This document shows positions 1,856 through 44,813 of a stretch of DNA of 64,000 nucleotides, one piece after another. The stretch covers positions 140,009 through 204,008 of IMG/VR virus record IMGVR_UViG_3300024336_000005. One strand, 5' to 3'. Every line of letters starts with the position of its first letter. The stretch's first letter is position 1. Both the position numbers and the translations under genes were made by a program. Below the pieces are notes generated by a model. It was not told where the DNA came from. It ran no database searches and worked only from the letters and a program-made list of their open reading frames with translations.

Positions 1856-1864
1856 GAGAATCAG

Positions 1865-2380: not shown

Positions 2381-2846
2381 AGCCATTCGGCTCCTATTGG
2401 AGTCCAATGGAAAGCAGCTCAGCGTAAAGGAAGTCTTTGATGCAATGCTCGCAGAACAGGACGCACATGCTTTAGCCCAAAGGCTTCCTCAAGAGGAGAG
2501 CGCTGCAGCGCAACTTGTTGCTGCCTGCTATGCCTTGGTTCCCGGCCTGCATGTAGAGTCTATGTACTATGGGCTAATCTTAGCAGCCTATCTGAATAGA
2601 AATAATATTGAGCTAAGCGTTGAGTCTACTGATATGACACTTGAAGACTGTGCCATAAAGAGGAAGAGCCTGGCGATGGAGATTAACACCATCATGAAGA
2701 GGGCCTTTGATCGAACTCAAGAGCACTTCAAGGGTGCAGAAGCAATGCTATTTGAACTAGAAAGGGGACTGCGTGAAGATACTGATCTATGTGAAGAAGA
2801 ATCAACAGGAGCCTCTCTCGATAGTCTCGAAGGCTCTGAGGGATAG
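2340..2846 (+). CDS. Hypothetical protein
   Basis: 168-aa ORF with SD GGAG. Confidence 0.65.
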   Translation: MSDATVDYDLLEGKAIRLLLESNGKQLSVKEVFDAMLAEQDAHALAQRLPQEESAAAQLVAACYALVPGLHVESMYYGLILAAYLNRNNIELSVESTDMTLEDCAIKRKSLAMEINTIMKRAFDRTQEHFKGAEAMLFELERGLREDTDLCEEESTGASLDSLEGSEG

Positions 2847-3297
2847 CATCAAGGGAGGGTTTGAATGGGAGGTTGTCTCCTGTTGGGATGACTTCGCCGA
2901 TGCTCTTGGGGTGTTTAAGGTTTATGCAGAGGATGGTGCGCCAAGACCTGGTGTTCACATTGACCTTAAGTGGCCAAGTCCTACGACATTCATAAAGAAG
3001 CCCGCGCTAAAAGAAAAGGTGTGGGCAGACATAGAGACTAAGCTTGTCCCCTTGTTTCATAAGAAGGCTCCTGATAGGGAGCCTCTTGTCCTTACGGACC
3101 ATCAGCTTCAAACAATCCTAAAGCTCCTTGGGGAGGCAAAGATTCCATTTGAAGTAGACCATCCCAATGGATCAGTCATAGGGATAAATAAGAACCATGG
3201 GGTGGAGTACAGTTTAACTTCTGCAGACGTTGCCTCTATGGTGGCTGCTGCTTGGCTATTCAAGTCTGGCTCGGTACGCCTCGAACGAAAAGAGTAG
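2773..3297 (+). CDS. Hypothetical protein
   Basis: 174-aa ORF in the co-oriented gene run. Confidence 0.6.
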   Translation: MKILIYVKKNQQEPLSIVSKALRDSIKGGFEWEVVSCWDDFADALGVFKVYAEDGAPRPGVHIDLKWPSPTTFIKKPALKEKVWADIETKLVPLFHKKAPDREPLVLTDHQLQTILKLLGEAKIPFEVDHPNGSVIGINKNHGVEYSLTSADVASMVAAAWLFKSGSVRLERKE

Positions 3298-3311
3298 TCA
3301 AGGAAAGGTAG

Positions 3312-3470
3312 GTGCTGTTTAGCAAGTATGCTAAATTAGTAGTAGGTTACTTTGTATATGGTGCGGCGAGAGAGACGTCATTTAGAATTCATGGCGTCCT
3401 CAAAGAAATGGCTGAGCCAAACTTAACCTTAAATTCTGATTTTGAATATGTTATCTATAGCATTGATTGA
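3312..3470 (+). CDS. Small hypothetical protein (52 aa, below ORF-track cutoff)
   Basis: GTG at 3312 after purine-rich AGGAAAGG; reads MLFSKYAKLVVG...YSID* and fills the apparent gap. Confidence 0.5.
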   Translation: MLFSKYAKLVVGYFVYGAARETSFRIHGVLKEMAEPNLTLNSDFEYVIYSID

Positions 3471-3479
3471 AGAAGGCAG

Positions 3480-4220
3480 ATGGATTGGAAAGAAAGACCA
3501 GCAAAGCAGAAGGCAAGAGATTGGCTGCTGTCGCAGCTGGACCTAAAGAGGGTAGACACATACCTAGGCCTCCCCGCAGGAGAGGCCATCTTCGAGAGGC
3601 TCTTAGTAAAAGAACATCCCGTATCTTCAATGGAACTCTTTGAACGAGATTTGGACGTAGCTGAATATCTTAGGGAAAGCATCTTTGCTTATAACCTAAG
3701 AGGGACGACTCTTCCCGAATGGAAGCACGCTCGTAGCGTAATAGTGAATGAAACAGACGTAGACGTCTGGCTGGGTCTGGCGAGAGAATTCGCTCCGTCC
3801 TTCCCCTCTTACGATCTTGCTTGGTTGGACTACTGTGGTCCGATTACCTCTACGAGATTAGAGAACCTTCAAAACCTTGCCGAAGCCATGCCAGATGATG
3901 GAGTCCTTGCGGTCACATTTATGGCTTGCAGAGAAGGGGCTGAGGTGTTTGGCGAAATGGTAGAGGCCGACTCTTCTGTTGCTATCATTAGGAAGAACAG
4001 AAGGTCGGATGCAGAGACTCCAGAGAAGCATCTCAAAAGAATTAGAATTGTTACAAACGCTCTCCTTGAGAAGACCTTTCCCTTGAGGATAAAGGTACTT
4101 CCCTATCAAGATGGAGCTCCAATGTTGTTGTTTGTAATCAAGAAGTCAGACAGCAAAAGAGGGATTGTTTCTCTCGCACGAAGGACTTCTGTAGAGGTCC
4201 TTCCATCACTAAAGGATTAA
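3480..4220 (+). CDS. Class I SAM-dependent methyltransferase-like protein
   Basis: YLGLPAGEA (motif I-like), MELFERD (acidic end of strand 2), YDLAWLDYCG (motif IV-like), DGVLAVTF. Confidence 0.55.
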   Translation: MDWKERPAKQKARDWLLSQLDLKRVDTYLGLPAGEAIFERLLVKEHPVSSMELFERDLDVAEYLRESIFAYNLRGTTLPEWKHARSVIVNETDVDVWLGLAREFAPSFPSYDLAWLDYCGPITSTRLENLQNLAEAMPDDGVLAVTFMACREGAEVFGEMVEADSSVAIIRKNRRSDAETPEKHLKRIRIVTNALLEKTFPLRIKVLPYQDGAPMLLFVIKKSDSKRGIVSLARRTSVEVLPSLKD

Positions 4221-4222
4221 TC

Positions 4223-4498
4223 ATGAACGCAGAAACAGTAACAGTTGACGACCTTATCATTTACACAGCAAGCCTTGAGGCAGAGGTTACAGAACTGGAA
4301 GAGGATAGAGAGCTCTTGACTGTAGAGAACCGTGGCCTTCGTCGAAGTGTAGGGGCCTATAAGGCCAATGGAACACGTCGTCGCGCAGCTCAAACGGAAA
4401 CGCAGGAGCGGCTCCAGGAACTTGAGAGTGAGAACCTACGCTTGAGGCGTTCGGTGGCCGGCTATAAGGCAAATGCAACACGCCGCGCCAATCGATAA
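4223..4498 (+). CDS. Coiled-coil protein with internal duplication
   Basis: ENRGLRRSVGAYKANGTRRRA and ENLRLRRSVAGYKANATRRA. Confidence 0.65.
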   Translation: MNAETVTVDDLIIYTASLEAEVTELEEDRELLTVENRGLRRSVGAYKANGTRRRAAQTETQERLQELESENLRLRRSVAGYKANATRRANR

Positions 4499-5247
4499 TG
4501 GCCCTCTGGTTTGATGAGGAGGGCTGGCTTCATTCGGATGAAGCCGATCTCCTTGTGGAGCACAACAAGACTCATAAGTTCTCAAAGGGAATGCATTCCT
4601 ATATCAAAAAGAACTTTGGCAATCAGTTGCATGGAACCATTACGCACTATGACGCCTTGCCTTCCGCAAGGCGAACGATTCAGGGGATGACTTCACAGAG
4701 GAAGACCCCCTCAACTCACTTTATCATTGCGCGAGATGGAAGAATTCATCAGCTGGTTTCCATCCACGATAGAGCCTGGCATGCTGCCTTTAAGAGGCTC
4801 GGCGGTAAGGTTGTAGAATGGCCTAAGACCAATGGGCGTATGCCCATGGGCAATGGTCACACTACTGGAAGCCCCAACCAATGGTTCATCGGCATTGACC
4901 TTTCCAATTGGGGAAAGCTCGATGGACTAACACCTAGGATAGCAAGGTCTTGGACTGGTGAGCCTATCAATGAATCTGATGTCAGTATGGTTCGCGGTGT
5001 GTGCTGGGAGAGATACAGAAAGGAAGCAACCGACTCTTATGTTGAATTGCTGGCTGCTCTTATCTTAGAGTTGGACCTCAAGAAGAATATGCATTACAGA
5101 CATAGTGATACCTCTCCGACAAGGAAGGTAGATCCAGGTCCAGCCTTTGACTTCACAACATATCTCAATAATGCTTATCATTGTGTTGATACTCTAGATC
5201 GAATCTTTGATTTAGATAACTTAGATGAGGAAAACGAGGAGCCTTAA
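4498..5247 (+). CDS. N-acetylmuramoyl-L-alanine amidase (Amidase_2/AmpD-like)
   Basis: ITHY, STHFIIARDGRIHQLV..DRAWHA, IGIDL and HSD..P.RKVDPG motifs. Confidence 0.85.
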   Translation: MALWFDEEGWLHSDEADLLVEHNKTHKFSKGMHSYIKKNFGNQLHGTITHYDALPSARRTIQGMTSQRKTPSTHFIIARDGRIHQLVSIHDRAWHAAFKRLGGKVVEWPKTNGRMPMGNGHTTGSPNQWFIGIDLSNWGKLDGLTPRIARSWTGEPINESDVSMVRGVCWERYRKEATDSYVELLAALILELDLKKNMHYRHSDTSPTRKVDPGPAFDFTTYLNNAYHCVDTLDRIFDLDNLDEENEEP

Positions 5248-5861
5248 TGAGCGAACAAGTGCAACAGACCATTGATACGGCACATAAGCCTACGCTGAAC
5301 CCATCATCTGGGGCACTTAGAGACGCTTGGCTAAGGAGCTTCAGCGAGAATGCCGTCGTAGGCAGGCTCTATGGAGAGGGTGGCGCTGTCATTTCAAAGG
5401 GCATGTCACCCATGGCTTGGTTGACCAAGCTGAGGGTGTTAGACCCCGGCAAGAAGTTTCACACGCTCTCCCCAGAGGAGCTTCAAGCTGTTTGGATTGA
5501 ACTTGCCTACAACTACAACACCGCTGCCTCCTTCCATGCTAACTACACCCTTGTTGCCAAGGCTTTAGCAGGAGAGGTCGAGGGAGTTGAGAGCGAATTT
5601 ATCGGTAAGGAAATAAGTGAATATAAACCGGGCGGTAAGCATTGGGACGCAGTCCTAAAGAAGGCCCCTCGTGCACCCGGCAAGGAAGTCCTTGAGAGGT
5701 TAGCTCGAGTTCACACATCCACAGCTCGGAAAGAGCTTCGTTGGTATAACATCCAAGCTGAATTCTTTTACAATATCATGATGAACCTAGAGACACAGAG
5801 ACGGTGCCTTAAGGACTATAATGAAATGGCAAGGGCCGACCCCTCTAACAGAGGGTTCTAA
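5247..5861 (+). CDS. Hypothetical helical protein
   Basis: 204-aa ORF, TAATG-coupled, SD GAGGAG. Confidence 0.65.
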   Translation: MSEQVQQTIDTAHKPTLNPSSGALRDAWLRSFSENAVVGRLYGEGGAVISKGMSPMAWLTKLRVLDPGKKFHTLSPEELQAVWIELAYNYNTAASFHANYTLVAKALAGEVEGVESEFIGKEISEYKPGGKHWDAVLKKAPRAPGKEVLERLARVHTSTARKELRWYNIQAEFFYNIMMNLETQRRCLKDYNEMARADPSNRGF

Positions 5862-5869
5862 GGAATTAA

Positions 5870-6574
5870 ATGACAGACCAAAATTATACTGACGTTATCG
5901 TATTGCTTGATAAGAGTGGATCAATGAGATCCATTGCTGGTGCCACAGTCAAGGGCGTAGATGATCTTATCACTGAGCAGGCTGCCGTTGGTGGCAAGTG
6001 CCTTTTCACTTTGATTCAGTTCAATGTGAATATGGAAACCACTTATGATGCTATCCCCATCTGTGAAGCTGGGGAGTTTTCTAAGAGGGACTATCGTCCT
6101 GGTGGTGCGACGGCATTGATGGATGCCCTTGGGTATACCATCAACAATACAGGTGTCCGCTTTCAGATAATGAAAGAAGAAGAGCGCCCTAACAAGGTTT
6201 TGTTTGTCATTGTGTCAGACGGTCTTGAGAACCAGTCTCAAATGTTTAGAGCTGAGACAGTTGCACAAATGATTGCCCATCAAGAGAACTACTACAAGTG
6301 GGAGTTCGTCTTCATCGGAACAGATTTTGATGTCGCAGCAGAACAAGATAGGCTGAAGTTTAAGAGCGCCTACATATTCAATAAAGATGGCGCTGGCACT
6401 GATGGTATGTTTAAGGGTCTTTCTCGCAGCATTGCGCGAGCCCGTACAACTGGCGAGGACTACAACACGGCATACGTAGTTTCTTCGGCACAAGCCGTGG
6501 CGGCAGGAACAGCTGATGTAGAGAGTCTTGCGAAGGCCACAGAAGCCACAAAGGCCTCCGCCAATAAGCCCTAG
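5870..6574 (+). CDS. von Willebrand factor A (VWA) domain protein
   Basis: MIDAS DKSGSM, GATALMDA, IVSDGLEN, WEFVFIG. Confidence 0.85.
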   Translation: MTDQNYTDVIVLLDKSGSMRSIAGATVKGVDDLITEQAAVGGKCLFTLIQFNVNMETTYDAIPICEAGEFSKRDYRPGGATALMDALGYTINNTGVRFQIMKEEERPNKVLFVIVSDGLENQSQMFRAETVAQMIAHQENYYKWEFVFIGTDFDVAAEQDRLKFKSAYIFNKDGAGTDGMFKGLSRSIARARTTGEDYNTAYVVSSAQAVAAGTADVESLAKATEATKASANKP

Positions 6575-6595
6575 CATTCGCTAGGAGGAGCATGC

Positions 6596-8935
6596 ATGTC
6601 CAAGGTAAAGGGAAGCGGCCTGATGGCCGCTTACAACTTCAAAGAAAAGTACGCACGTTATAATGGAGAGGAAAGCAGGAGGGAAGAGTGGCCTGAGTCG
6701 GTCCGTCGCATGTTTTACATGCACGACAACGCTTACGCTCACCTCTTGTCACCTGAAGACCTTGCGGAGGTCAGTGATGCAGAAGATTCTGTAAGGGCGA
6801 AGCTCCTCCTTGGCTCTCAGCGTGCCTTACAATTTGGAGGCAAGGGTGTAGAAGCTCACAACATGAGAATCTACAACTGTGCTGTCTCTTACTGTGACAG
6901 ACCAAGGTTCTTTGCAGAAGCCTTTTACATGTTGCTCTGTGGATGCGGCGTAGGGTTCTCGGTGCAGCAGCATCACGTTGCTCAGCTGCCTAAGTTCCGT
7001 ACTCATCCCACACAGATTAGCAAGGTCGTTACGATAAAAGACAGCATCGAAGGATGGGCAGATGCGCTTGACTATCTTGTTAGCTACTATCTTCAGCTAG
7101 CTCCTATTGATCATGCACAAGAGATTTTTGCAAAGCCTGAATTTGACTACTCTGAGATCCGAGATCGAGGAGCTAAGCTTTCAGTAGGTGGTACCGCCCC
7201 AGGACCTGAGCCTCTCAGAAGAGCCTTAGAAAAGATTAAGGCAATCTTTGAGAGGGCCATTGCAAATGGACAGGCAGAACTTCGCTCCGTTGATGCCTAT
7301 GATATTGTTATGCATGCTTCTGATGCTGTACTTTCTGGCGGCGTGCGTCGTTCTGCTTCTATCGCGCTTTTCTCTCCTGATGATGAGCTCATGGCAGGAG
7401 CAAAGACTGGCAATTGGTTCATTGATAATCCTCAGCGTGGCAGGAGTAATAACTCTGCTGTTCTTGTAAGAGGAGTGGACAACCTAGAGAACTTCAAACG
7501 ACTCATGAGGTCTGTCCGAGAGTTTGGAGAGCCTGGGTTCATCTTTGTTGAATCTCTTGAATATATCTACAACCCTTGCGTAGAAGTTGGCATGTGTCCG
7601 GTTCTAATCTTGGATCCAAATGGAGATGTTGTAGAACAATATACATTAGACCTACTTAATTTCACGAAACGAAATGAATGGACCGCAGAGGGATATACAT
7701 TTCGGAGTGGATGGCAGTGCTGCAATCTTACGGAAATGAATGCTTCTGCCTGGACCTCTCAGCATGATGCATATAAATGTGCACGTCATGCAGCGATTAT
7801 TGGGACCCTTCAGGCTGGCTACACTGATCCTGGATATCTAACAGCAACTTCACAACTCATCATTGAAAGAGAGTCCCTCCTGGGTGTTTCCATGACAGGG
7901 ATGATGGATAATACGACGTTGTCGTTAGATCCAATTGTGCTTAGGAGGATGGCTGAGATTGTTCGTGAAACAAACGCAGAGTGGGCCGCAAAGATTGGTA
8001 TCAATCCTGCTGCTAGAACCACATGCGTAAAACCTGCTGGTAACAGTTCGGTCCTTCTGTCTGAAAGGTTCTTCGTAGCCTCTGGCTGTCACGCGCACCA
8101 CGCTAAGAGAATGATTCGTAGAGTCCAGGCACACAAGGATGGTCCCATCCTACAGTGGTTTAAGGAACATAATCCTCATATGATTGAGGAGAGTGTTTGG
8201 AGTGCAAACAAGACTGATGATGTGATTAGCTTCCCCATTGAGATTCAAGAGGGGGCTCTCACAAAGGATCACTTTACGGCAATTCAATTCTTAAGCACTG
8301 TCGCACTGATTCAAAAGAACTGGGTCATCCCTGGCACAGCTAGACCAATGTCCTGCGAAGGCTTAACGCATAATGTATCCAATACATGCACCGTTCAGCC
8401 TGATGAGTGGGGTGACGTCGGACGCTATATCTATGAGAACAAGAAGCTCTTCTCTGGGCTTTCTCTCTTGAGTAGCTCGGGAGATTTCATCTACAGGCAA
8501 GCCCCTATGCAGAGGATTGTCTTTGAGGATGAGCTTGCGGAACAGTTTGGTAGATCTAACGTTGGTGCAGCTAAGCATTTGAAGCGTCATATAGAAAGGC
8601 GCTACGGTAGCCTTCACGACGTCATGATGCCACTTAAGATGGTACTTGAGGGGTACACCACAGAAGAGGCTATAGAGGGCACCAAGGTGCATCCAGAGCT
8701 ACTGTGGGATACCTATAAGAGGATCCGTGCTGTCATCCATGTTGAAGACACAGATGACATCCTATTTCTACTGTCCGCTATAGGACATGAGGAACTATGG
8801 AAGAGCCTTACTGAAAATATGGTTGATGTAGATTACTCTCAGCTCTATGAGGGAGAGGATCTTACAAAGCTTGCAGACAATATTGCCTGTGGTGGTGGCT
8901 CTTGCGAGCTGGACTTTAGCATTCCAAAGGAATAA
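6596..8935 (+). CDS. nrdJ: Class II (adenosylcobalamin-dependent) ribonucleotide reductase
   Basis: YNCA, GGVRRSA, NPCVE (radical Cys), CNLTE, TTCVKPAG and C-terminal CGGGSC. No beta-subunit gene adjacent. Confidence 0.85.
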   Translation: MSKVKGSGLMAAYNFKEKYARYNGEESRREEWPESVRRMFYMHDNAYAHLLSPEDLAEVSDAEDSVRAKLLLGSQRALQFGGKGVEAHNMRIYNCAVSYCDRPRFFAEAFYMLLCGCGVGFSVQQHHVAQLPKFRTHPTQISKVVTIKDSIEGWADALDYLVSYYLQLAPIDHAQEIFAKPEFDYSEIRDRGAKLSVGGTAPGPEPLRRALEKIKAIFERAIANGQAELRSVDAYDIVMHASDAVLSGGVRRSASIALFSPDDELMAGAKTGNWFIDNPQRGRSNNSAVLVRGVDNLENFKRLMRSVREFGEPGFIFVESLEYIYNPCVEVGMCPVLILDPNGDVVEQYTLDLLNFTKRNEWTAEGYTFRSGWQCCNLTEMNASAWTSQHDAYKCARHAAIIGTLQAGYTDPGYLTATSQLIIERESLLGVSMTGMMDNTTLSLDPIVLRRMAEIVRETNAEWAAKIGINPAARTTCVKPAGNSSVLLSERFFVASGCHAHHAKRMIRRVQAHKDGPILQWFKEHNPHMIEESVWSANKTDDVISFPIEIQEGALTKDHFTAIQFLSTVALIQKNWVIPGTARPMSCEGLTHNVSNTCTVQPDEWGDVGRYIYENKKLFSGLSLLSSSGDFIYRQAPMQRIVFEDELAEQFGRSNVGAAKHLKRHIERRYGSLHDVMMPLKMVLEGYTTEEAIEGTKVHPELLWDTYKRIRAVIHVEDTDDILFLLSAIGHEELWKSLTENMVDVDYSQLYEGEDLTKLADNIACGGGSCELDFSIPKE

Positions 8936-23083: not shown

Positions 23084-24076
23084 ATGAAAGACTTTGTACA
23101 TCTTCACCTGCACACTAAGTTCAGCCTACAAGATGGTACCACTGAGCCTGAAGGGCTCATGAAAAAGTGTGCCGATCATGGGATGAAGTCCGTTGGAGTG
23201 ACAGATCATGGGAATATGGCAGGGATGTGGGATTGTGCTAAGTACGCTAAGCAGTATGGCATTAATCTAATCCCTGGCAATGAATTCTATGTTGTTCCTG
23301 ATGCACAAAAGAGCAGGGGGAATGATTGGCGGAAGGGGAAGTCCTCTCATCTTGGACTTCTTGCTTATAGTCAGACCGGTTGGGATAATCTGTTGAGGCT
23401 TACTGCGTTATCGAATCTTGAGGGATTCTATAACGAACCTCGGATAGACTATAGGATGCTCAGAGAGAACTCCGAAGGATTGTGGTGTATGTCTGGCTGC
23501 CTCGGCGGCTTCATAAATACAGCCATTAAGAATAATCAATCCCCAAGGTTTGCGGTAGATATGCTGCATAGTATCTTTGGAGATAGGCTATCTCTTGAGA
23601 TACAGGTGAACCCAATACCTGACCAGCAGATTCTTAATGATGAAGTGATAGCAATTCATCATGCTACAAAGATTCCCCTCGTTGCTACCGTTGATGCTCA
23701 CTACTTAGATAAGACTGATAGCCACAACCAGGACATCCTGTTTGCAATGCAGTTAGGGAAATCCCTAGAGGACCCAGAGAGGCTGAAGATGCCTCCAGAA
23801 GAGCACTCTGTTGAAACCCCAGAGGAAGCCATCAAGAGGTTCACAGATAAGTATGGGAACCTTGGATTGGAGGCTTGTCGGAGGACGGTAGAGATTGGAG
23901 ACAACTCTCACTCAGAGATTACTTACCAAAGTAAGAGCTATAAAATTCCCACCCTTGATGTTGCAGCACAGCCAGACTTCCAAGAGTTTCTTAAATGGAA
24001 GACAGGCTGTGAATGTCACACCTCAGACAAAGGGGAGTGCTTAGTACATGGAAAAGCCTGTGGGCATAACCACTAG
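23084..24076 (+). CDS. dnaE: Stand-alone PHP domain of DNA polymerase III alpha
   Basis: FVHLHLHTKFSLQDG, TDHGNM, GNEFY, HLGLLA, GFY..PRID, SGCLGG, LVATVDAHY. Ends at the PHP-palm linker with a Cys/His tail. Confidence 0.9.
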   Translation: MKDFVHLHLHTKFSLQDGTTEPEGLMKKCADHGMKSVGVTDHGNMAGMWDCAKYAKQYGINLIPGNEFYVVPDAQKSRGNDWRKGKSSHLGLLAYSQTGWDNLLRLTALSNLEGFYNEPRIDYRMLRENSEGLWCMSGCLGGFINTAIKNNQSPRFAVDMLHSIFGDRLSLEIQVNPIPDQQILNDEVIAIHHATKIPLVATVDAHYLDKTDSHNQDILFAMQLGKSLEDPERLKMPPEEHSVETPEEAIKRFTDKYGNLGLEACRRTVEIGDNSHSEITYQSKSYKIPTLDVAAQPDFQEFLKWKTGCECHTSDKGECLVHGKACGHNH

Positions 24077-24099
24077 AAATAAAACTATAGGAGATTAGC

Positions 24100-24393
24100 A
24101 TGTTAGAAGTTACCCCCGCACCTGGATTCGCCATGGTGACACTTGAGAAGGACGCACAGACAAAGTCTGGACTTTTTGTTGCAGGCACACAGGACGGCCT
24201 AAAGAGAGGTCGCGTAGAAGGCCTTGGCCCTGAGTTTGTCACAGACCATGGTGTTTCAATCGCCTTCCCAGCAGATGTTGGAGATGTCGTTCTATTTGAC
24301 AAGGGAACTGAATTTTCAATCCCGGGGCAAGGAAGCTACTACTTCGTGTGGCGGAACAACACTGTTGGCAGGATCGTCGAGTCAGGAGAGTGA
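24100..24393 (+). CDS. groES: GroES-like co-chaperonin
   Basis: TKSGLFV, GRVEGLGP, VGDVVLFDK. Confidence 0.75.
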   Translation: MLEVTPAPGFAMVTLEKDAQTKSGLFVAGTQDGLKRGRVEGLGPEFVTDHGVSIAFPADVGDVVLFDKGTEFSIPGQGSYYFVWRNNTVGRIVESGE

Positions 24394-24719
24394 CAGATTC
24401 ACTTGGGAATGAATACAGAGTGGGAGATATACTCTTGTACGTCGCCGGGGGAGATCAGGCTCGGCCACAGATTGCCATGTTTGTTGAAGCTTATATGAAT
24501 GCAGATGGAGATCCTAAAAATAGGTTCCTTTTTGCGAACCGTAGAACGTGGAATCGAGATCAAAATAACGTGTCTGTCAGAACTATTGGACGGCCCTGGA
24601 GGGCCCGCTTGAAGCGGCTCTCTGATGTCCTTCCTCATGACAAGGCCCTCGAGGCAAGAGATTTCTTTGAGTATGCCCTGGAGCTAAAGGGATACGAGCT
24701 TGGGCTGCCTCTTCTTTGA
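24390..24719 (+). CDS. Hypothetical protein
   Basis: GTGA overlap with groES; TDSLGNEYRVGDIL motif. Confidence 0.6.
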   Translation: MTDSLGNEYRVGDILLYVAGGDQARPQIAMFVEAYMNADGDPKNRFLFANRRTWNRDQNNVSVRTIGRPWRARLKRLSDVLPHDKALEARDFFEYALELKGYELGLPLL

Positions 24720-24766
24720 GGTATGATGTCAGAATGGAGAGGTCTCAGAGAGAAGGAGAGGTTCAA

Positions 24767-25592
24767 ATGAAGAGTGATGATCAGAACTCCTACCTTTTAT
24801 TTTGGGCCCAGAAGGGGCTTAAGGCAAGAGGGCTCTGGGATGACCAGGTCTATAAGGATAGGGTAGATTACGAGTGGAAAGTTATCTCTCGTATGGGGTT
24901 TGCAGGATACTATCTTGTAGTCGCTGACTACGTGGCTTGGGCCCGTAGTCAAAGAATCCCAGTGGGGCCTGGACGTGGTTCAGGTGCTGGCTCTTTGATT
25001 GCCTATGCTGTAGGCATAACGGATGTGGATCCCATTAAGTGGGGCCTAATGTTTGAGAGGTTCTTGAACCCAGGTAGAGTCTCCATGCCTGACTTTGACA
25101 TTGACTTTGGAAAGAGAGATCGACTCAAGGTTTTTGACTACCTGTCAGAGAAATACGGACATCAGAACGTTTGTCAGATTGGTACTATTGGCACCATGAA
25201 GGCAAAGCTTGCGGTCAAAGATGTGGGGAGAACCCTTGGACTTGATCCCTCTGAGCTGGAAAGATTCTCTAGCTTAATTCCCGACGAAGAAAGAGGAGGA
25301 CAGGGCGATCATGCTATCACCTTGAGCCTCCTCTTGGATCCTCCCAGGGAGCTTGTTAAGGCTCACGGAGAGGCTCTTGCAAAGTTCAGAACTGCTTATG
25401 AATTCGACAAAGACTTTCATAGAGTTGTCAACCTTGCTGTAGAGCTGGAAGGAATCCCAAAGAGTTACGGGGTGCACGCAGCTGGAGTTGTCATCGGAAT
25501 TGATTCTCTATGGGGAGATATTCCTCTTAGGAAATCAAATGATGGAAGGCCTGTTAGTCAGTGGACTGACAAGCAGGTCGAAAAGATGGGGT
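24767..25592 (+). CDS. dnaE: DNA polymerase III alpha catalytic core, exon 1
   Basis: SD AGGAGAGG; GFAGYYLVV.D, GPGRGSGAGSL, FERFLNP.RVSMPDFDIDF, HAAGVVI. Confidence 0.93.
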
Positions 25593-25734
25593 TAGCTTAT
25601 TAGCCCCTGTATGGAGCAATCCGTACAGCAAACAAGGTGAACCCCAAAGCAAAGGGGGTGTGCTGCATCTGCAGCGCTAACAGGGGAACCTAAGTGAGCG
25701 AGTCTCATAAGGCAATCCTGTGCTAAGCTTTTGA

Positions 25735-25763
25735 TTGATTAGGTATTGCAAAATTGATATAAT
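25735..25763 (+). promoter_or_regulatory. Sigma70-type promoter for the intron HNH gene
   Basis: TTGATT-17 bp-TATAAT with extended -10 TG. Confidence 0.6.
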
Positions 25764-25790
25764 AGGAGCTCAACAAACAGGAGCTGCGTT

Positions 25791-26327
25791 ATGCAAAAGT
25801 TAGAAGGATTTGAGAAGGTAGAATCTGAAGGAATTTTGGGAGAGTATTATATTCATCCAGACGGAAGGATCTACAGAGATTACGGACATAGAATAAAATT
25901 TCTTTCCGAGAGGCCAAATGCTTATGGCTATAGTCGAATAAGCTTGCTTCATCAGGATGGACGTAGAGTGGATCGAATGATGCATCGATTATTGATGTTA
26001 ACATTTGTCCCAAATCCAGATAATAAGCCACAAGTCAATCATAAAGACGGAGATAAAAGCAACAATCAGCTTTCCAATTTGGAATGGGTTACAGATCGAG
26101 AAAATAAGCTTCATTCACATAGAGTGCTTGGAGCCAAATCTAGTGACAAAAGTTGTTTCTTATTTTATTTTGGGGGCTTTGTTCAAAGGTTTCCAAACAT
26201 CCAAGCTGCTTGTAACTATGCAGCTAAAAAATATGGGTGCTCCTCAAAGTCTTTATGTAAATATTACACATCTAATGGATGTGCAATTATTACAGAAGAA
26301 AGTGCAACGACTATCCTAACGGAGTAG
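25791..26327 (+). CDS. Intron-encoded HNH homing endonuclease (I-HmuI-like)
   Basis: HRLLM.TFVPNPDNKPQVNHKDGDKSNNQLSNLEWVT..EN..H; located in the P6 region of the intron. Confidence 0.9.
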   Translation: MQKLEGFEKVESEGILGEYYIHPDGRIYRDYGHRIKFLSERPNAYGYSRISLLHQDGRRVDRMMHRLLMLTFVPNPDNKPQVNHKDGDKSNNQLSNLEWVTDRENKLHSHRVLGAKSSDKSCFLFYFGGFVQRFPNIQAACNYAAKKYGCSSKSLCKYYTSNGCAIITEESATTILTE

Positions 26328-26420
26328 GGGGGGTATTGCTCCTCTCGAAGCGCCTTGATCTCTGAATCAATACAGAGAATATGATATAGTCTGTGCCACT
26401 AGAAATAGTGGAATAACACG

Positions 26421-28141
26421 TTGTAAAGTTCGACTTTCTGGGACTCCGCACACTTGATGTAATTGAAGACGCCTGTCGTAGCATAGAGAAAAGAACTGGA
26501 GTGACTATTGATTGGGAACAGACTCCCGAGGATGATGGTCCTACATTCGATATGCTCAGCAGAGGAGACACCTTTGGTGTCTTCCAGCTGGAGGCATCTG
26601 GTATCTCTGGGTTTACCAAGGGATATAAGCCAAGGTCTATCGATGACATCTCAATCATCTCAGCTCTATACAGACCTGGTCCGCTGGATAATGGGATGGT
26701 AGATGCCATTCTGTCTGTCCGCAAGGGGAAGAAGATTGAAGAGAGTCCTGTTGATGTCATTAAAGAAATCCTTAAGGATACGAATGGGGTTCTGACATAT
26801 CAGGAACAAGTATTAGCAATATCAAGGGAGATGGCTGGGTTTACCCTGTCGGGTGCTGATCTATTGAGGCGCGCGATTGGCAAGAAGCTGCCCGAAGAGA
26901 TGCAAGCGCAGGAGCAAAACTTTGTTGATGGCTCCGTAGAGAAGGGGTATCCAAAGCATCAAGCTTTGGAAGTATTTGAAATCATTAAGAAATTCGCTGA
27001 CTATTGTTTGTCATATGATACTAAGGTATTGACCGATAAGGGGCCTCTCTCAATTGGTCATATTGTAGAAAATCAGCTAGAGGTTTCTGTTTATTCTATT
27101 GATGAGCATGGGCTTGTCTACTCTCAGCCGGTGGCTCAGTGGCATGACAGGGGCATAAGAGAAGTCTTTGAATACAAGCTTGAGGATGGCTCTGTCATCC
27201 GAGCGACCGAAGATCATAAGTTTATGACCGTCGATGGAGATATGCTTGCTATTGAAACAATCTTCCTGCAGAATAGGGATATGCTTGTCATTGAAACAGG
27301 CAAGATTCAAATAGGGGAGATTGAAATGAAGCCTTATAATAAACTAAATGACCTGGACAAACAACTTGTCCAACGACTGTACTATGAAGGATTATCCTTT
27401 GAGGACATCTCAAAGGAAGCTGTGGTATCTCAACGTTCTGTTAGTCGTGTTTTGCAAGAGGCTAATATTAACACCAGAAGGAAAAACCGTTATACCCTTA
27501 ATGAAAGCTTCTTCTGTGGAGCATATGATCATTATGAATGTGCATATTTTTTAGGCCTACTGGCAGCAGATGGATGCGTTACTCATAAGGATTACATCGC
27601 CCTCCAGCTTATTGATGAAGAACTTGTCTTATGGTTTCGCAAAGCGATCGAATACTCAGGAGAAGTTCGGCTTATCCTTGGCGAGGAGCGAAAGCCCCCT
27701 GGCCAAGATGCCTATAGGGTGAACTTTAGCTCTGCCATAATGTCAGAGGAACTTCGTTCATATGGAATCATTGCCGGAAGACATCTTCAAGCAATTCCGA
27801 AGTTAGAAGATTCAATTGTGCCTCATTTTATTCGAGGGTATTTTGATGGAGATGGATGTGTTTACTTAAGGCCAGAGGGTTCTGGTGGAGTTGTTCATAT
27901 TGTAGCCTCCGAGGCGTTTTGCGAATCGCTTAAAGAATACTTTGGATTCGGAACAATTAGTTCACATCCCAGTGGTATGTATTATTGGAGGATCTTTGCA
28001 AAAAAACATGTGAATGTTTTTTATGAAGCCCTATATGATTCTGATGGTTCAGAGACCCTGTGCCTTAATCGCAAAAAGCAACTAATGGAAGCCTTCCTAC
28101 GGAGCTACAAGTATGAAAATTGTTGGAAAGCAAAGGATTGA
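26421..28141 (+). CDS. dnaE: DnaE exon 2 + N-intein + in-frame LAGLIDADG endonuclease
   Basis: KFDFLG, GVFQLE, ALYRPGP, YQEQV, ADLLRRAIGKK, FADY then CLSYDT (intein start 27005). The frame ends at stop 28141. Confidence 0.92.
27005..27300 (+). mobile_element. Split intein N-half, Npu/Ssp DnaE-type
   Basis: CLSYDTKVLT...QPVAQWHDRG..EVFEY.LEDGS.IRATEDHKFMTVDG.ML.I..IF (blocks A and B). Confidence 0.92.
27326..28141 (+). CDS. LAGLIDADG homing endonuclease with N-terminal HTH (own SD/ATG, in frame with IntN)
   Basis: SD AGGGGAG at 27313-19; YFLGLLAADGCV and FIRGYFDGDGCV; LNRKK. Confidence 0.85.
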   Translation: MKPYNKLNDLDKQLVQRLYYEGLSFEDISKEAVVSQRSVSRVLQEANINTRRKNRYTLNESFFCGAYDHYECAYFLGLLAADGCVTHKDYIALQLIDEELVLWFRKAIEYSGEVRLILGEERKPPGQDAYRVNFSSAIMSEELRSYGIIAGRHLQAIPKLEDSIVPHFIRGYFDGDGCVYLRPEGSGGVVHIVASEAFCESLKEYFGFGTISSHPSGMYYWRIFAKKHVNVFYEALYDSDGSETLCLNRKKQLMEAFLRSYKYENCWKAKD

Positions 28142-29351
28142 GGATCAATCAGTCTATGATATTGGAGTAGAAAAAGACCATAACTTTCTTCTTGCTGATG
28201 GACAGGTTGCTTCCAATTGCTTTAACAAAAGCCATAGTGTGGCCTATTCAATGCTTTCATATAGAACAGCTTATCTTAAGTGTCACTATCCTTCTGACTT
28301 CTATGCTGCAGAGCTTACGAGCCACGAAGGGGAAGTCAAGAAGCTTCTCCCAGCAATGGCAGATGCTCGAGCACACCACATGAAGATCAAGACTCCTGAT
28401 ATTAATCTTAGTGAGGAGTGCTTTACGGCGACCGCCAGACATGAAATAAGGTTTGGACTTGCTGGAATTAAGGGGCTTGGGACAAAGGCTCTTCAGTCTA
28501 TTATGAATGAAAGAGCCAATGGGAGTTTTGAGTCTATCACTGGCTTATGCAAGAGGCTCTCCTCTTCTGAGATTAAGTCGAATAATCTCACAGCCTTAGC
28601 AAGGTCTGGTGCATTTTCCCAAATAGAAACTGGAATGAACACAGCAGAGCTTGCAGAGTATGCCGTTAACACAGCGATTGCTCTTCGTAGCTATCATAAA
28701 GATGAGAAGAAAGGCCAGGTGTCTATCTTTTCTGTTATGACTGAAGCTCCAGAAAATGAGATTAATGTTCAGAGACCGTCAATTCATTTGGATGATGGAG
28801 ATGAACTGGAGCTAGAGAAGGAAGCCTTGGGCTTTTATATCTCAGGATCTCCTCTGGATAAGTACAATACTATTAAGGAAAGATCCCATATAGATGAAAT
28901 TGAAAGCTTAGAAGTTGATGGCATTTGGGTATCAGTTCTTGCCAGGATAACAGAGCTTAAGATTAGAAATGGAAAGAGGGGAAGCTTTGCAATACTACAG
29001 CTAGAAGATACTAGCGGCAGCATTGGAGCTAAGATTTGGTCTAACAATATGGCTGAAGCTCGTCCATACTTAGAAGAAGGTAAGAGTGTTGTTGTCAGAG
29101 GAAAGACAAACTCCTACAAAGGACTTGAAATTGTTGTGGATTCTATTGTAGACGCTGAATCAGAAGTGAAAAGACTTTTGAAGAGAGTGGTCATTCATAG
29201 ACTTGATTCCACGATTTTAAATACACTCTTGCAATTGCCTGCAGGAAATGTTCCTATAGATCTTGAGCTTTCAAATGGCCAGATCAAACAACGACTTGGA
29301 TTTTTTGAAATCCAACCCCACATGCTGAGGGAACTGAATGAGATGGACTGA
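28113..29351 (+). CDS. dnaE: Split intein C-half (35 aa, 28113-28217) + DnaE C-terminal extein (HhH, OB)
   Basis: SD GGAG at 28101; MKIVGKQ...VYDIGVEKDHNFLLADGQVASN|CFNKSHSVAY; PDINLS, IRFGLAGIKGLG, EKEALGFYISGSPL, LEDTSG. Confidence 0.93.
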   Translation: MKIVGKQRIEDQSVYDIGVEKDHNFLLADGQVASNCFNKSHSVAYSMLSYRTAYLKCHYPSDFYAAELTSHEGEVKKLLPAMADARAHHMKIKTPDINLSEECFTATARHEIRFGLAGIKGLGTKALQSIMNERANGSFESITGLCKRLSSSEIKSNNLTALARSGAFSQIETGMNTAELAEYAVNTAIALRSYHKDEKKGQVSIFSVMTEAPENEINVQRPSIHLDDGDELELEKEALGFYISGSPLDKYNTIKERSHIDEIESLEVDGIWVSVLARITELKIRNGKRGSFAILQLEDTSGSIGAKIWSNNMAEARPYLEEGKSVVVRGKTNSYKGLEIVVDSIVDAESEVKRLLKRVVIHRLDSTILNTLLQLPAGNVPIDLELSNGQIKQRLGFFEIQPHMLRELNEMD

Positions 29352-41443: not shown

Positions 41444-41647
41444 ATGAAGAAAGTTGTTGGCTACTATACCTTGGCTCGAAACGAAAGTATCGATCTTCCT
41501 CACGATGCACACATCATTGAATCTCGGGTAGACCATAATGGTGTTGCTACGGTCCTTGTTTCATATATGGAATATGAGACCGAAGCTGAGATTCCTGTGC
41601 CAGGTGGATGGGGAGCCCCACCTCTTATCCCTGTCTCCTCTACTTAA
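41444..41647 (+). CDS. Hypothetical protein
   Basis: SD AAGGAG; last gene of the + arm. Confidence 0.6.
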   Translation: MKKVVGYYTLARNESIDLPHDAHIIESRVDHNGVATVLVSYMEYETEAEIPVPGGWGAPPLIPVSST

Positions 41648-41859
41648 ACAATAGCCGCCAACGCGGCTTCCGCGACTGTAAGCCTTGCTTTAGTCGTTAC
41701 CATCTCCGCCTCCACGGCGTTGAGATCGGTTTCCAAAAGAAGAGTAGCTGCATTAAACTGTGTTGTGCTGATACTGTTCCTGACCAGCTTTTCTAGCTGG
41801 TCTATGCGTACTAACGCCGCATTCAATGCGGTTTCCAATTCTGTGTTAGTTAGTGCCAT
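41644..41859 (-). CDS. Small coiled-coil protein
   Basis: Heptad pattern; coupled to the upstream holin-like gene. Confidence 0.6.
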   Translation of the reverse strand: MALTNTELETALNAALVRIDQLEKLVRNSISTTQFNAATLLLETDLNAVEAEMVTTKARLTVAEAALAAIV

Positions 41860-42161
41860 TACACCCCCTCCCCTTTATCAATAGCTTTGTCTGATTCCTG
41901 GTCTGATGTTGTATCCCCTATATTCCCTTTTAATTTTAGAGCAGTCCTTGGGATTGCGACACGGGCTACTGATATACCTATATAGCCTAGGGCTATGGTT
42001 ACAATCGAAGATGCGATTGTTTCAAAAATTCCCACACCCCAACCGAAAATAGAATACGAAATTCCTATTGTACTGATAAGTACTATTCCTATTAGAGCTA
42101 ACAAAAACTTACGACTTAAGTATCCATTGTCATTATGGTAGTCTTTTTCGGTGAGGGCCAT
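41859..42161 (-). CDS. Holin-like two-TM membrane protein
   Basis: SRKFLLALIG.. TM1, second TM ending YIG, charged C-terminus. Confidence 0.6.
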   Translation of the reverse strand: MALTEKDYHNDNGYLSRKFLLALIGIVLISTIGISYSIFGWGVGIFETIASSIVTIALGYIGISVARVAIPRTALKLKGNIGDTTSDQESDKAIDKGEGV

Positions 42162-42167
42162 TTTTAT

Positions 42168-42521
42168 TTATTCCTCGGACGCCGGGGTATCCTCAGCTTT
42201 GGCTGGGTGTTCTACCTTTGGCTTGCGGGTTCTTCTCTTGGGAGCCTTCTCTTCGAGAGGCTCTTTCTCAACAGGGGGTAATGGTTTAGGTGCTTCTTTG
42301 AGAGGCTCCTCTCTTTCGTGCTCAGGCTTTGGCCGCAGTTCCTTGTCGTCTGGAATGGGGCGTTCGAGCTTAGGTTCTGGGGCGGGCGCTGCCGGTGCAG
42401 GCGCCGCTTCCACAGGTAGGGCTGGCTCTACTGCCCATGTACCACGTCTCCATTTTCTTTGCTTCTGTGGTGACCTGGGGGCAAATCCTCTGCCAACTCT
42501 GCTTACATTTTTAGTACTCAT
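42168..42521 (-). CDS. Pro/Glu/Lys-rich low-complexity protein
   Basis: PAPAAPAPEPK and EEPLKEAPK/KEPLEEKAPK repeats; SD AAGGAG. Confidence 0.6.
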   Translation of the reverse strand: MSTKNVSRVGRGFAPRSPQKQRKWRRGTWAVEPALPVEAAPAPAAPAPEPKLERPIPDDKELRPKPEHEREEPLKEAPKPLPPVEKEPLEEKAPKRRTRKPKVEHPAKAEDTPASEE

Positions 42522-42530
42522 CTTTTCTCC

Positions 42531-44813
42531 TTAAATTACTTGAAAGTCGATTACAATTATTGGGTCGGCTCCATCGATGATGTCAAATGCAGGTGTGACC
42601 GCATTGAAGATGCTCGGCTCTATGTCGAATCCAGTCGTCAGCTTATTCCTGACCTTTAGTGTATAGGTTGCAGTTGAATCGTAACCAGTGGTCACTGTGT
42701 AGTTGGCGTGACCCAAGGCAGTCTCAAAGACTACCTTCAGGATGCCCGTTCCCACAGTCCAAGTAGAACCTGCAGTTACGTCAACGTTGAAGAGGTCTGA
42801 AGTATCAATTGCGGAAATGTTGTGAGTGCCCTTTGATGGATCAACCGAGATCATCCCCTTTGACTTAACAACGTTATCCTTGTAAACCCTATATGGGTCA
42901 GGTCCTCCTACGCCGCCGTATGTAACACCATCATCATGAGGCGCCCAACCGGTTGGGGAGAAGGCTGCTGCCGTGCAAACAAGCCCATCAGCGTCTGCTG
43001 TTGCTGGGCCCTGCCATGTATTGTCAGCGAAAAGGCTTTCAAGGTACTTGAATGAACCAATCTCTCCATCACCGCCAATGGTCACATTCGCTGTATAAGT
43101 CCCGGCGCCTTCTGCGCTTGTGATGCTAGGACCATGATTGAAGGTCAGGCCTGTAATCCAAGCTGCATTGGTTGCATGGAACTCAATCCCTCCCCCGCCA
43201 GAAATAATCTTTGCAGCATCTACCCCATATAAATAAGCATCATTAGTTGCCTTTACGAGCGCAGAAGAATTAGACCCCTGAGCATCCACAAGGATGCTGT
43301 TGGCAGCCCCGATGGTTTTGATTCTTGAATTGGCACCAGTTCCTGATGCCGTCCGAGTGAAGATTCCTAAAGCTGTAGGATCACTAATCGTCTCAACCAA
43401 AGAGCCTAGCGTCAGGTCTACAGTCATGCCATTGCCGGCGTTGATGTCGACAACGCCTGAGCCAGAGCTTATTCTTGCAAATGTTCCAGCATCTAGTGTA
43501 ATGAAGTCCCCTCCCGTTGTATCAATCAGGAAGTCATCTGTCGTTATGCTAGAGCCTGCTGCGCCAACCATGAGCAATGAAGCCCATGCATCGATGGTCA
43601 GGTTTCCACTAATGGTATTGCTGATGGTAAGTTGGTGTGGGGCTGTCAGAAATGAATGAGCCCCAACGGAATCCTCTGAATATAGAGAGACGTGAGGCAG
43701 CCCGCCATTTGCTATGGTCTGCCTGCCTATAAAGATGCCTCCATATCTGGGGTCTGCCGTTGCAGTCTGCTTGCCAATGAAGAGCTCGTCCGTCTCGTCT
43801 TGACCTGACCCTCTGGTCATACGAAGCTCTAGCAGATCTGTCGCAGGGGCTGCTCCACCTGTCGCGAATAGGCTCTGCGTATACTCCGTCCCACTGACCT
43901 CATCATTCTCATACCACATGGACATGAAGTTGAGAGTTCCCGCATCTCCTGTTCCTGCAAATACAGGTCCAGTCCAGGTGAGTAGTCCGTCGATATTTAT
44001 TGCTGGGTCAACAGATTGGACAGGCACTGAAATTTGTACGGGGTTTATTGCTACCGTGCTTATGGTGTTCCCATTGTTATAGGCAGTCTGAAGGGTAGCT
44101 ACTCCTCCTAGTCCAAGCATCGCTGTATCCAGCGCCCCTAGCGCTGTGAGGATATCGGTGCTACCTACCATGTAAGTAGAGCCAGATATCTCTAGCCTTG
44201 TGGAGATGTCCCTGAAGGTGTTTATCTCTGCTTCTGTTCCTATCTGATGCTTAACGTCTAGGATTCTTTCTGCGAGAGAGTAGGTAGATGCAACTGGAGC
44301 GCCAGCAAAGTGCACCGTGTTGAACGTTCCACCTGCTCCTATGTTGTCTGGGTCCCAAGTCTCACCGGCCAATTGAATGATCCAGTTCCTTAGCTGTGTG
44401 TCATCATAGGCTGCGTTGTTCGCGTTGACCTCGTTCAAGAGGTCCTCTACTCTCCCCACCCTACCGAATAGACTCTGATATGAGTCCAGTACTACTTCCT
44501 TAATTGTTCTAGGACGTGTACCGTTATGAAGCAATCCCCCAAACTCTTGTGGTCGTGAAGTCTGGTCCATGTATACCTGTGAACCATCTAGTCCGTTAGT
44601 GATAGGATCTATCTTAGCGTTCCTATCTCCTATGGATCTTTGTTCCCTTCCTTGGGGAAGTGATGCTAGCAGGGGGTATAGTGCGCCGTTCCACTGAGCG
44701 GTAATCTCGTTCAGGTCGGTTATGATCTCTTGGAAGGACTCTTGTAGAGCCTCCCTGTCCTCAAGGTCTGCCCTGACGACACCTACTGGACGAAGTTCTC
44801 TTAGTTCGCTCAT
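42531..44813 (-). CDS. Virion structural protein, tail fibre/spike-like
   Basis: Helical N-terminus, TLQTAYNNG motif, long G/A/T-rich beta-strand region, C-terminal G..KV.F...ANY.V...TTGF fibre-type domain. Confidence 0.6.
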   Translation of the reverse strand: MSELRELRPVGVVRADLEDREALQESFQEIITDLNEITAQWNGALYPLLASLPQGREQRSIGDRNAKIDPITNGLDGSQVYMDQTSRPQEFGGLLHNGTRPRTIKEVVLDSYQSLFGRVGRVEDLLNEVNANNAAYDDTQLRNWIIQLAGETWDPDNIGAGGTFNTVHFAGAPVASTYSLAERILDVKHQIGTEAEINTFRDISTRLEISGSTYMVGSTDILTALGALDTAMLGLGGVATLQTAYNNGNTISTVAINPVQISVPVQSVDPAINIDGLLTWTGPVFAGTGDAGTLNFMSMWYENDEVSGTEYTQSLFATGGAAPATDLLELRMTRGSGQDETDELFIGKQTATADPRYGGIFIGRQTIANGGLPHVSLYSEDSVGAHSFLTAPHQLTISNTISGNLTIDAWASLLMVGAAGSSITTDDFLIDTTGGDFITLDAGTFARISSGSGVVDINAGNGMTVDLTLGSLVETISDPTALGIFTRTASGTGANSRIKTIGAANSILVDAQGSNSSALVKATNDAYLYGVDAAKIISGGGGIEFHATNAAWITGLTFNHGPSITSAEGAGTYTANVTIGGDGEIGSFKYLESLFADNTWQGPATADADGLVCTAAAFSPTGWAPHDDGVTYGGVGGPDPYRVYKDNVVKSKGMISVDPSKGTHNISAIDTSDLFNVDVTAGSTWTVGTGILKVVFETALGHANYTVTTGYDSTATYTLKVRNKLTTGFDIEPSIFNAVTPAFDIIDGADPIIVIDFQVI

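Follow-up and report, generated by a model that had tools for sequence, protein, structure and literature searches.

A phage DnaE replicase encoded in pieces: a separate PHP gene and a core interrupted by a group I intron and a fractured split intein

We have analysed a stretch of viral DNA of 64,000 nucleotides (positions 140,009 to 204,008 of IMG/VR record IMGVR_UViG_3300024336_000005; hereafter the window, whose own numbering is used throughout) in which the replicative DnaE polymerase of a phage of about 204 kb is encoded in pieces: a PHP gene and a core interrupted by a group I intron and a split intein (Table 1). Gene order was established from six-frame open reading frames (ORFs) and a Pfam domain scan. 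From position 23084 to 29351 it runs PHP, a Cpn10-like ORF, a small ORF, the palm, an HNH_3 ORF, an ORF with fingers, intein, helix-turn-helix (HTH) and LAGLIDADG endonuclease, and an HHH_6/OB ORF; the palm ORF spans 24767-25603, and the finger, intein and endonuclease ORF is open from 26501 and stops at 28141. A first-pass annotation of this DNA, made from the letters alone, had read these pieces as one polymerase in four coding segments needing RNA splicing, protein trans-splicing and non-covalent assembly. Its four elements (the PHP gene, the core with its intron, the N-intein with LAGLIDADG, and the C-intein ORF) all lie where it had placed them, and its four-segment reading was upheld by every in-silico test that we ran. 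The predicted mature core, 470 residues of N-extein plus 377 of C-extein, comes in a script check to exactly the 847 residues that it had given, with the junction KFADY/CFNKSH (a slash marks a splice, ligation or insertion point here and below). All the domains of a C-family DnaE are thus found (PHP, palm, fingers, HhH and OB), yet not in one polypeptide, PHP standing apart; both catalytic aspartate motifs of the core, MPDFDIDF and KFDFLG, are kept.

Table 1. Coordinates of the pieces of the dnaE locus, its neighbours and the one-locus cyanobacterial forms
Feature	Record	Coordinates	Strand	Basis
Stand-alone PHP subunit of DnaE, 330 aa, putative 3'-5' proofreading exonuclease	window	23084..24076	+	Pfam PHP 3e-37
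Cpn10/GroES-like ORF, not a polymerase part	window	24100..24393	+	Pfam Cpn10 25.9 bits, cut-off 21.1
Small ORF just 5' of the core, context only	window	24390..24719	+	ORF call
dnaE core exon 1, 275 codons + 1 nt, palm with MPDFDIDF aspartates	window	24767..25592	+	Pfam DNA_pol3_alpha 2.6e-78
Group I intron, 828 nt	window	25593..26420	+	Rfam RF00028, 27.6 bits, E=6e-4
Intron-encoded HNH homing endonuclease gene, 178 aa, in P6 region	window	25791..26327	+	Pfam HNH_3 3.1e-10
dnaE core exon 2, N-extein part, KFDFLG (E. coli D555 equivalent) and fingers, ends ...KFADY	window	26421..27004	+	Pfam DNA_pol3_finger 2.8e-45
N-intein, 107 aa, cyanobacterial DnaE split-intein family	window	27005..27325	+	phmmer E=2e-30 to 4qfq, 2keq, 1zd7
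HTH and double-motif LAGLIDADG homing endonuclease, 271 aa	window	27326..28141	+	Pfam LAGLIDADG_3
C-intein, 35 aa, ...DHNF...VASN	window	28113..28217	+	Matches Npu/Ssp C-inteins from first residues on
C-extein, 377 aa, Cys+1-FNKSH, HhH and OB	window	28218..29351	+	Pfam HHH_6 1.9e-21, tRNA_anti-codon 1.2e-10
One-locus cyanobacterial dnaE loci	L132, L134-L140, L156, L163, L167
Laspinema olomoucense D3b locus, three overlapping ORFs	L135, NZ_JAMXFA010000046.1	1132-5013, 4989-5789, 5782-7296	one strand

PHP has been described as universal within the C-family polymerases (PMC12926913). In the clade of phages to which the window belongs, and in difference from C-family polymerases generally, it is a gene of its own, two to seven genes from the core; the groES and the further ORF that the first-pass annotation had seen between the two correspond to the Cpn10-like ORF and the small ORF. 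The PHP protein aligns to residues 6-297 of the Pol III alpha subunit of Thermus aquaticus and keeps all nine metal ligands (HHDHEHCDH), a motif taken as the mark of an active PHP proofreader (PMC12926913). The same ligand set, together with palm, fingers, HhH and OB, is found in T. aquaticus DnaE and in M. tuberculosis DnaE1, where PHP is an active proofreader. In E. coli alpha numbering, the PHP protein covers residues 6 to about 278 and the core begins at about 293, so that the break falls at the PHP/palm boundary and nothing is lost. Separate PHP genes also occur in three related loci, L003, L010 and L012, 2 to 7 genes from the core (the sequence of a further one, L013, is too short to tell), and this is the sole break fixed throughout the clade. 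The PHP protein is 72% identical to that of L003, which makes it the best-conserved of the extein-type pieces; among 1.84 billion representatives its only close relative is a stand-alone protein of 325 aa (62%), followed by full-length DnaE at 46% or less, and shorter matches in this search may be fragments. The subunit would bind the core non-covalently. As an observation in its own right, its C-terminus (window ~24005-24073, residues ~308-330) is rich in Cys and His, GCECHT..G.CLVHG..C.H.H, and this is kept in L003; the tail may be a metal-binding or core-docking element.

The core opens at ATG 24767, preceded by AGGAGAGG, and its first exon aligns to residues 320-548 of E. coli alpha, collinear with the uninterrupted core of L003. 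The frame of exon 1 stops at a TAG (25601-25603) that lies in the P1 loop of the intron. P1 is a helix of 7 bp, GGGGU(25592)UA with UAG(25603)CCCC (-10.6 kcal/mol), whose U25592.G25603 wobble marks the 5' splice site, and the same helix occurs in L012; folds were computed for both P1 and P2. At the other end the intron closes with its terminal G26420, and exon 2 opens with TTGTAAAG at 26421. Removal of the intron restores the reading frame exactly, GGGT(25592)/TTGTAAAG(26421) giving ...EKMG-F-VKFDFLG. The joined exons, ...GGGT/TTGTAAAGTTCGAC, can be laid against the intron-less L003, ...GGGT TTGTTAAGTTTGAC: the DNA agrees around GGGT/TTGT, and the encoded peptides are MGFVKFDFLG in the window and VGFVKFDFLG in L003. 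By alignment to E. coli alpha, the intron parts the MPDFDIDF aspartates in exon 1 from the equivalent of D555 in KFDFLG in exon 2. As the first-pass annotation had it, the core starts at 24767 and the insertion lies four codons ahead of the third catalytic Asp; L003 runs uninterrupted across the junction.

Two Rfam group I matches cover the intron, one at 26063-26412 (27.6 bits), which contains the GACUA...GAUAUAGUC P7 elements and a GNRA-capped P9, and a partial one at 25680-25774 (18.8 bits), the match being split by a 537-nt HNH gene that lies within the P6 region. This gene has a Shine-Dalgarno (SD) sequence, GGAG, 8 nt 5' of its ATG, it reaches with its 3' end into the intron core (R element), and it is missing from the homologous intron of L012 (Logan SRR26425194), which is ORF-less, 288 nt long (L012:9555-9842; 38.3 bits, E=5e-8) and inserted at the same codon position. 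The P7-P3'-P8-P7' signature (R/S, GACUA...UAGUC) is present in more than 116 viral contigs, and the core is therefore an ordinary phage-type group I core. With the ORF loop excluded the two introns are 73% identical, and their consensus fold holds 9 compensatory and 4 one-sided changes and 0 broken among 67 pairs, the statistics of two sequences being weak; covariation across the conserved catalytic core (P3-P8, P7) is thus seen in a comparison of two sequences, for which RNAalifold gives a P3 pairing alternative to the canonical one. The intron resembles the introns of the T4 td/nrdB type and the Pol III alpha intron of 0305phi8-36 in having its ORF in a peripheral loop, the exon stop just inside the intron, a P7/J8-7 core, and a position beside catalytic residues in a gene of DNA metabolism. 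Unlike the known phage introns, it has no close relative among deposited phages, scores below the Rfam threshold and is paired with a split intein. Standard annotation of this locus, the intron being below threshold, would give two truncated 'DNA polymerase III alpha' pieces and a stray HNH gene.

The second interruption of the core is a split intein. The N-intein starts at FADY/C, with Cys1 at 27005, and its block B (T..H) is intact; the three entries that phmmer matches to it, 4qfq, 2keq and 1zd7, are structures of the Npu and Ssp DnaE inteins. As the first-pass annotation had claimed, a separate ORF (28113-29351) supplies the C-intein and the C-terminal extein, ...VASN/CFNKSH, and the C-extein aligns to E. 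coli alpha 751-1130. The splicing residues are in place (CLSYDT..., RATEDHKF, DHNF, VASN/C); the two halves lie on separate polypeptides with their own translation signals, that of the C-intein being an ATG at 28113 with an SD sequence (GGAG) 8 nt upstream; and both the insertion point and the sequence family are those of cyanobacterial DnaE, the site being identical to that in Nostoc. Compared with L003, the N-intein has a dN of 0.15 and a dS of 2.5, and conservation along the locus is highest in the intein halves.

Cyanobacterial split DnaE inteins, Ssp and Npu, were reportedly described by Wu in 1998 and by Caspi in 2003, and this family underlies much of protein-ligation technology. In the classic cyanobacterial split DnaE the halves are encoded at distant loci, without an endonuclease, and PHP is within the same polypeptide. 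The phage intein shares with Ssp and Npu the site (FA[ED]Y/CFNKSH) and the break, with a C-intein of 35-36 aa that starts from the equivalent Met. It differs from them in several respects: (i) the phage halves are adjacent; (ii) an endonuclease lies between them; (iii) PHP is separate; and (iv) the intein is far closer to the cyanobacterial one than is the host gene. Indeed, the N-intein is ~68% identical to that of Nostoc and the C-intein ~71% identical to a cyanobacterial (P0225) C-intein, whereas the flanking exteins are only ~32-38% identical to the Nostoc and P0225 proteins; this difference speaks for an exchange of the intein between the dnaE genes of phages and cyanobacteria at a time when the host genes had already diverged.

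The endonuclease between the halves is predicted to be a monomeric double-LAGLIDADG protein: its AlphaFold2 model (predicted local distance difference test, pLDDT, 82.7) has that fold, with two helices bearing acidic residues, and the best PDB folds found by Foldseek are I-Tsp061I (E=3e-7) and PI-PfuI (E=2e-6). Five homologues keep the catalytic motifs, LGLLAADG and FDGDG, of this putative homing endonuclease, and its dN against L003 (0.32, dS saturated) resembles that of the polymerase core. In the intein-bearing relatives L003, L013 and L010 it is free-standing between the intein halves. The window has GGG (27311-27313) at the position of the TAG stop of L003, so that the endonuclease is fused in frame to the N-intein; it has its own SD (GGGGAG) and the ATG at 27326 all the same. 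No such fusion is present in the other 3 phage loci or in the 9 cyanobacterial loci parsed. Thus the first-pass annotation was right that the core gene ends in an N-intein plus LAGLIDADG, in frame up to the stop at 28139-28141, but the endonuclease is not an ordinary intein domain, being free-standing in the relatives.

The arrangement of the relatives is that of the fractured genes, in which a host gene is broken by a split intein, an endonuclease gene lying between the halves, all on one strand, mainly in phages and with DnaE included (Dassa, London, Stoddard, Schueler-Furman & Pietrokovski 2009, PMC2677866). The window is alike in its one-strand order and in the overlap of the endonuclease 3' end with the C-intein start, 29 bp here and 6-69 bp in the published genes (PMC2677866). 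The three DnaE fractured loci of that study have other insertion points, inteins whose similarity to those of cyanobacteria is only ~40%, and endonucleases of the GIY-YIG or Vsr-like kind, LAGLIDADG being unmentioned (PMC2677866); the window, in contrast, has the cyanobacterial site, a Nostoc-like intein (~70%) and a LAGLIDADG endonuclease. A stop and a spacer of 27-51 nt precede the free-standing endonuclease of fractured genes, and these are found in L003, L013 and L010 but not in the window. In the fractured-gene model the fusion would represent half of the hypothetical step IIIa, with only the 5' flank lost (PMC2677866).

With so bulky an endonuclease attached to the N-intein, the splicing chemistry might be harmed and association spared, so that the intein halves would act only as a high-affinity dimerisation module and no peptide would be ligated. 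This is hardly probable: Cys1, the T..H block, the terminal Asn and Cys+1 are all conserved, Cys+1 takes the place of the Gly of the intein-free allele, and no other pieces of the locus are as conserved as the intein halves.

The start of the C-intein and the end of the endonuclease ORF share 29 nt, read in different frames, and this overlap invites two further explanations. The step from endonuclease to C-intein could be a simple frame change within an overlap that holds an AAAA run, and the source is a metagenomic assembly, as would suit a contiguous dnaE broken by sequencing or assembly errors. We consider this extremely improbable. The region is base-identical over 17.2 kb in two IMG/VR contigs from different samples (source metagenomes IMG 3300024336 and 3300024257), the window being identical to contigs of 204 kb and 143 kb. 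Exact copies of the 546-aa protein are encoded on 10 contigs and of the 412-aa protein on 11. The overlap and the start are kept in L003 (88% nucleotide identity), and the same stop/ATG overlap is present in L013, although these relatives differ at ~35-50% of residues, so that the split is real and conserved. The other breaks are of another order: the intron is no indel but a structured RNA of 828 nt that carries a gene, and whole genes part PHP from the core. Read-level errors, which the first-pass annotation had named as what would undo its reading, are excluded by the identical contigs and by the same layout in diverged relatives. Alternatively, a programmed +1 frameshift could join the two ORFs into a conventional large intein that splices in cis, since a +1 shift anywhere in 28113-28141 yields the canonical domain order. 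However, no recognisable shift site is present (the P-site codon before the stop is GAT TGA in the window and GCT TGA in L003), the SD and ATG are conserved, and the first residues of the C-intein align with the natural starts of the Npu and Ssp C-inteins. The absence of a common shift site and the conserved start with its SD make the frameshift very unlikely; moreover, the overlap in L010 differs (4 nt), and ~11 cyanobacterial loci likewise have three separate ORFs.

So many interruptions in one gene could also mean that dnaE is a decaying pseudogene and that the phage uses the Pol III of its host, a view that has very little in its favour. Against L003, dN is 0.15-0.50 for all seven coding pieces with synonymous sites saturated (which leaves dN/dS undefined for four segments), and on these rates all seven are under purifying selection. 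The catalytic residues of polymerase, PHP, intein and LAGLIDADG are all intact, and the gene sits in a + strand replication module with thymidylate synthase, dihydrofolate reductase (DHFR), a DHH phosphoesterase, primase-helicase, an AAA+ ATPase and ribonucleotide reductase (RNR).

A survey of related phage dnaE loci, which the first-pass annotation had proposed, showed that the separate PHP recurs and that intron and intein are sporadic. L003 and L013 have the intein at the same site as the window and no intron. L010 also lacks the intron and has a different split intein, with an N-intein ~35% identical and Ser+1, inserted four codons downstream (FADYCFNK/CLTGET ... ISKN/SHAIAY, L010:8815-10110) and with a free-standing LAGLIDADG gene. 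L012 has the intron and an intein-free allele, FADYGFNKSH (L012:10361-10600); it is a useful empty-site reference for both homing endonucleases. In L131 an endonuclease 39% identical to that of the window (it likewise starts MKPYNKLN...) lies within a group I intron (L131:150-1480; RF00028, 58.4 bits, above the gathering score) that interrupts dnaE at FGRYG/F, roughly one codon away from where the intein is inserted: the endonuclease family and the dnaE target are the same, and the carrier is an intron rather than an intein. Apart from L131, a metagenome scan brought up only the phage of the window again. The independent presence or absence of intron and intein, each linked to an endonuclease, is the signature of selfish homing elements.

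The first-pass annotation had taken the three kinds of break as several possible control points for replication onset. In favour of breaks retained as regulatory checkpoints that time replication, the intron splits the first two catalytic aspartates from the third, the intein needs both its halves, and each step is formally rate-limiting. We regard this as unlikely, and the proposal of control points is unsupported: intron and intein come and go independently even in close relatives, each carries or adjoins a homing endonuclease, a homologous endonuclease is carried by the group I intron that L131 has at this dnaE site, as in typical selfish invasion, and we identified no regulatory element. 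The interruptions are best understood as selfish DNA that an essential gene tolerates, rather than as regulatory design.

The explanation that we hold, with good confidence, is that of a C-family replicase that was ancestrally encoded in this clade by two genes, PHP and a PHP-less core, and whose core was invaded by two independent homing elements: (i) a group I intron with an HNH endonuclease gene, inserted four codons before the third catalytic aspartate, and (ii) a split intein of the fractured kind, at the site that is canonical for cyanobacterial DnaE (FADY/CFNKSH), with the HTH-LAGLIDADG cassette between its halves. Its anatomy, homology and conservation, the restored frame and the catalytic residues are all present in the DNA. 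Expression would proceed as follows. The intron would splice itself from the mRNA, joining GGGU/UUGUAAAG. Translation would then yield two proteins, N-extein-IntN-endonuclease (848 aa) and IntC-C-extein (412 aa), and possibly free endonuclease as well, from the internal ATG. The intein halves would associate and trans-splice into an 847-aa core with ...KFADY-CFNKSH..., to which the 330-aa PHP protein would bind non-covalently, providing proofreading.

Several points weigh against this model. Support for it as a whole is sequence inference. Both intron matches fall below the Rfam gathering score of 50, and a threshold scan reports no intron. The 271-aa endonuclease at the C-terminus of the N-intein could slow or block assembly. 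Finally, the nearest DnaE proteins of cultured phages are only 42-46% identical to that of the window. The whole region gave no megablast match among 50,697 phage records; tblastn returned distant DnaE (46% or less) and generic LAGLIDADG matches, nothing closer; and when IMG/VR was scanned with the C-half, only this phage again and distant DnaE genes came up.

A similar one-locus organisation occurs in cyanobacterial chromosomes. In ~11 cyanobacterial genomes, dnaE-N with the N-intein, an HTH-LAGLIDADG gene and the C-intein with dnaE-C lie in one locus, on one strand, in overlapping ORFs; the genomes include Laspinema olomoucense, Phormidium pseudopriestleyi, Chamaesiphon polymorphus, a Gloeobacterales metagenome-assembled genome, Dapis and Oscillatoriaceae. 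Their endonucleases are 38-43% identical to that of the window and are broken in L156 and L167. These loci were found with a degenerate endonuclease profile, an earlier genome scan with strict endonuclease patterns having found none. Our literature search did not find a one-locus cyanobacterial dnaE with an endonuclease described; the closest description is a 2026 preprint on an out-of-frame endonuclease in a cyanobacterial dnaX intein. In a tree of N-inteins the phage sequences, three in number, group together with 99/100 support, and their clade and the cyanobacterial inteins meet in an unresolved polytomy, the 'dispersed' label of the database DnaE-N proteins in this tree being assumed. The branch to the outgroup, L010, is very long, so that the tree has no useful root and gives no direction of transfer between phages and cyanobacteria. 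The length filter of our protein search leaves out full-length DnaE, so that the apparent cyanobacterial affinity of the exteins is biased, and we have not used it to infer the host. As a side observation, the 1293-aa DnaE-N ORF of L135 (1132-5013) holds in its finger region another intein, contiguous and ~420 aa long, which seems to include an endonuclease domain (...YGIL/CLPQG...HN/CYQEQ...).

We tentatively suggest, as a possibility that we rate below even, that the phage clade and the one-locus cyanobacterial loci are surviving intermediates in the making of the cyanobacterial split DnaE intein. A mobile HTH-LAGLIDADG cassette, which also rides a group I intron at this place, may have broken a mini-intein at the dnaE site; the whole unit of N-intein, endonuclease and C-intein may have moved between phage and cyanobacterial dnaE; and loss of the endonuclease with dislocation of the halves may have produced the classic dispersed split gene. 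Were this true, the fusion in the window would be a half-step toward a bifunctional intein, the first to be observed.

Phage group I introns, split inteins and fractured genes are each known singly. The first-pass annotation knew of no described case that combined all three kinds of fragmentation, and our literature search likewise found none. As far as that search reached, three things are new: the three kinds of fragmentation in one replicase gene; a fractured, endonuclease-bearing form of the Npu/Ssp DnaE intein family, in phages and in several cyanobacterial chromosomes; and an in-frame fusion of N-intein and endonuclease that matches a hypothetical step of the gene-breaking model. The chief interest is that the canonical DnaE split intein is tied to a mobile, endonuclease-bearing form common to phages and cyanobacteria. 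Since the phage intein is close to the cyanobacterial DnaE split intein of biotechnology, the locus bears on the origin of that intein, and with the phage and cyanobacterial forms together the origin of the best-known natural split intein becomes directly testable. In addition, the locus offers new natural DnaE-type intein pairs, and a polymerase with PHP in trans is a system in which to study how proofreading is coupled to a C-family core.

Some minor features remain. Weak homologues of the Cpn10-like ORF lie at the equivalent place in L003 and L012. The small ORF just before the core shares only a C-terminal GYE[LV]GL with the pre-core ORFs of L010 and L012, and past this short motif the conservation of the small ORFs between PHP and core is unconvincing. 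Downstream of dnaE in L131, a NrdJ-like ORF of 1054 aa (L131:2328-5492) seems to hold an intein (...NPCVTGDTPILTKDGY...). In Clostridia and other Bacillota (L141, L142, L146 and L147), LAGLIDADG genes 33-36% identical to that of the window follow directly on the finger-coding region of DnaE and are probably intron-borne; in L142 and L147 the dnaE near this gene is apparently in several open frames. Elsewhere in the window the coding strand flips from + to - near 42 kb (41500-42600), where the AT skew also changes sign, and beyond this point lie large minus-strand ORFs of up to 942 aa, with hardly any PHROG matches, which presumably form the structural module.

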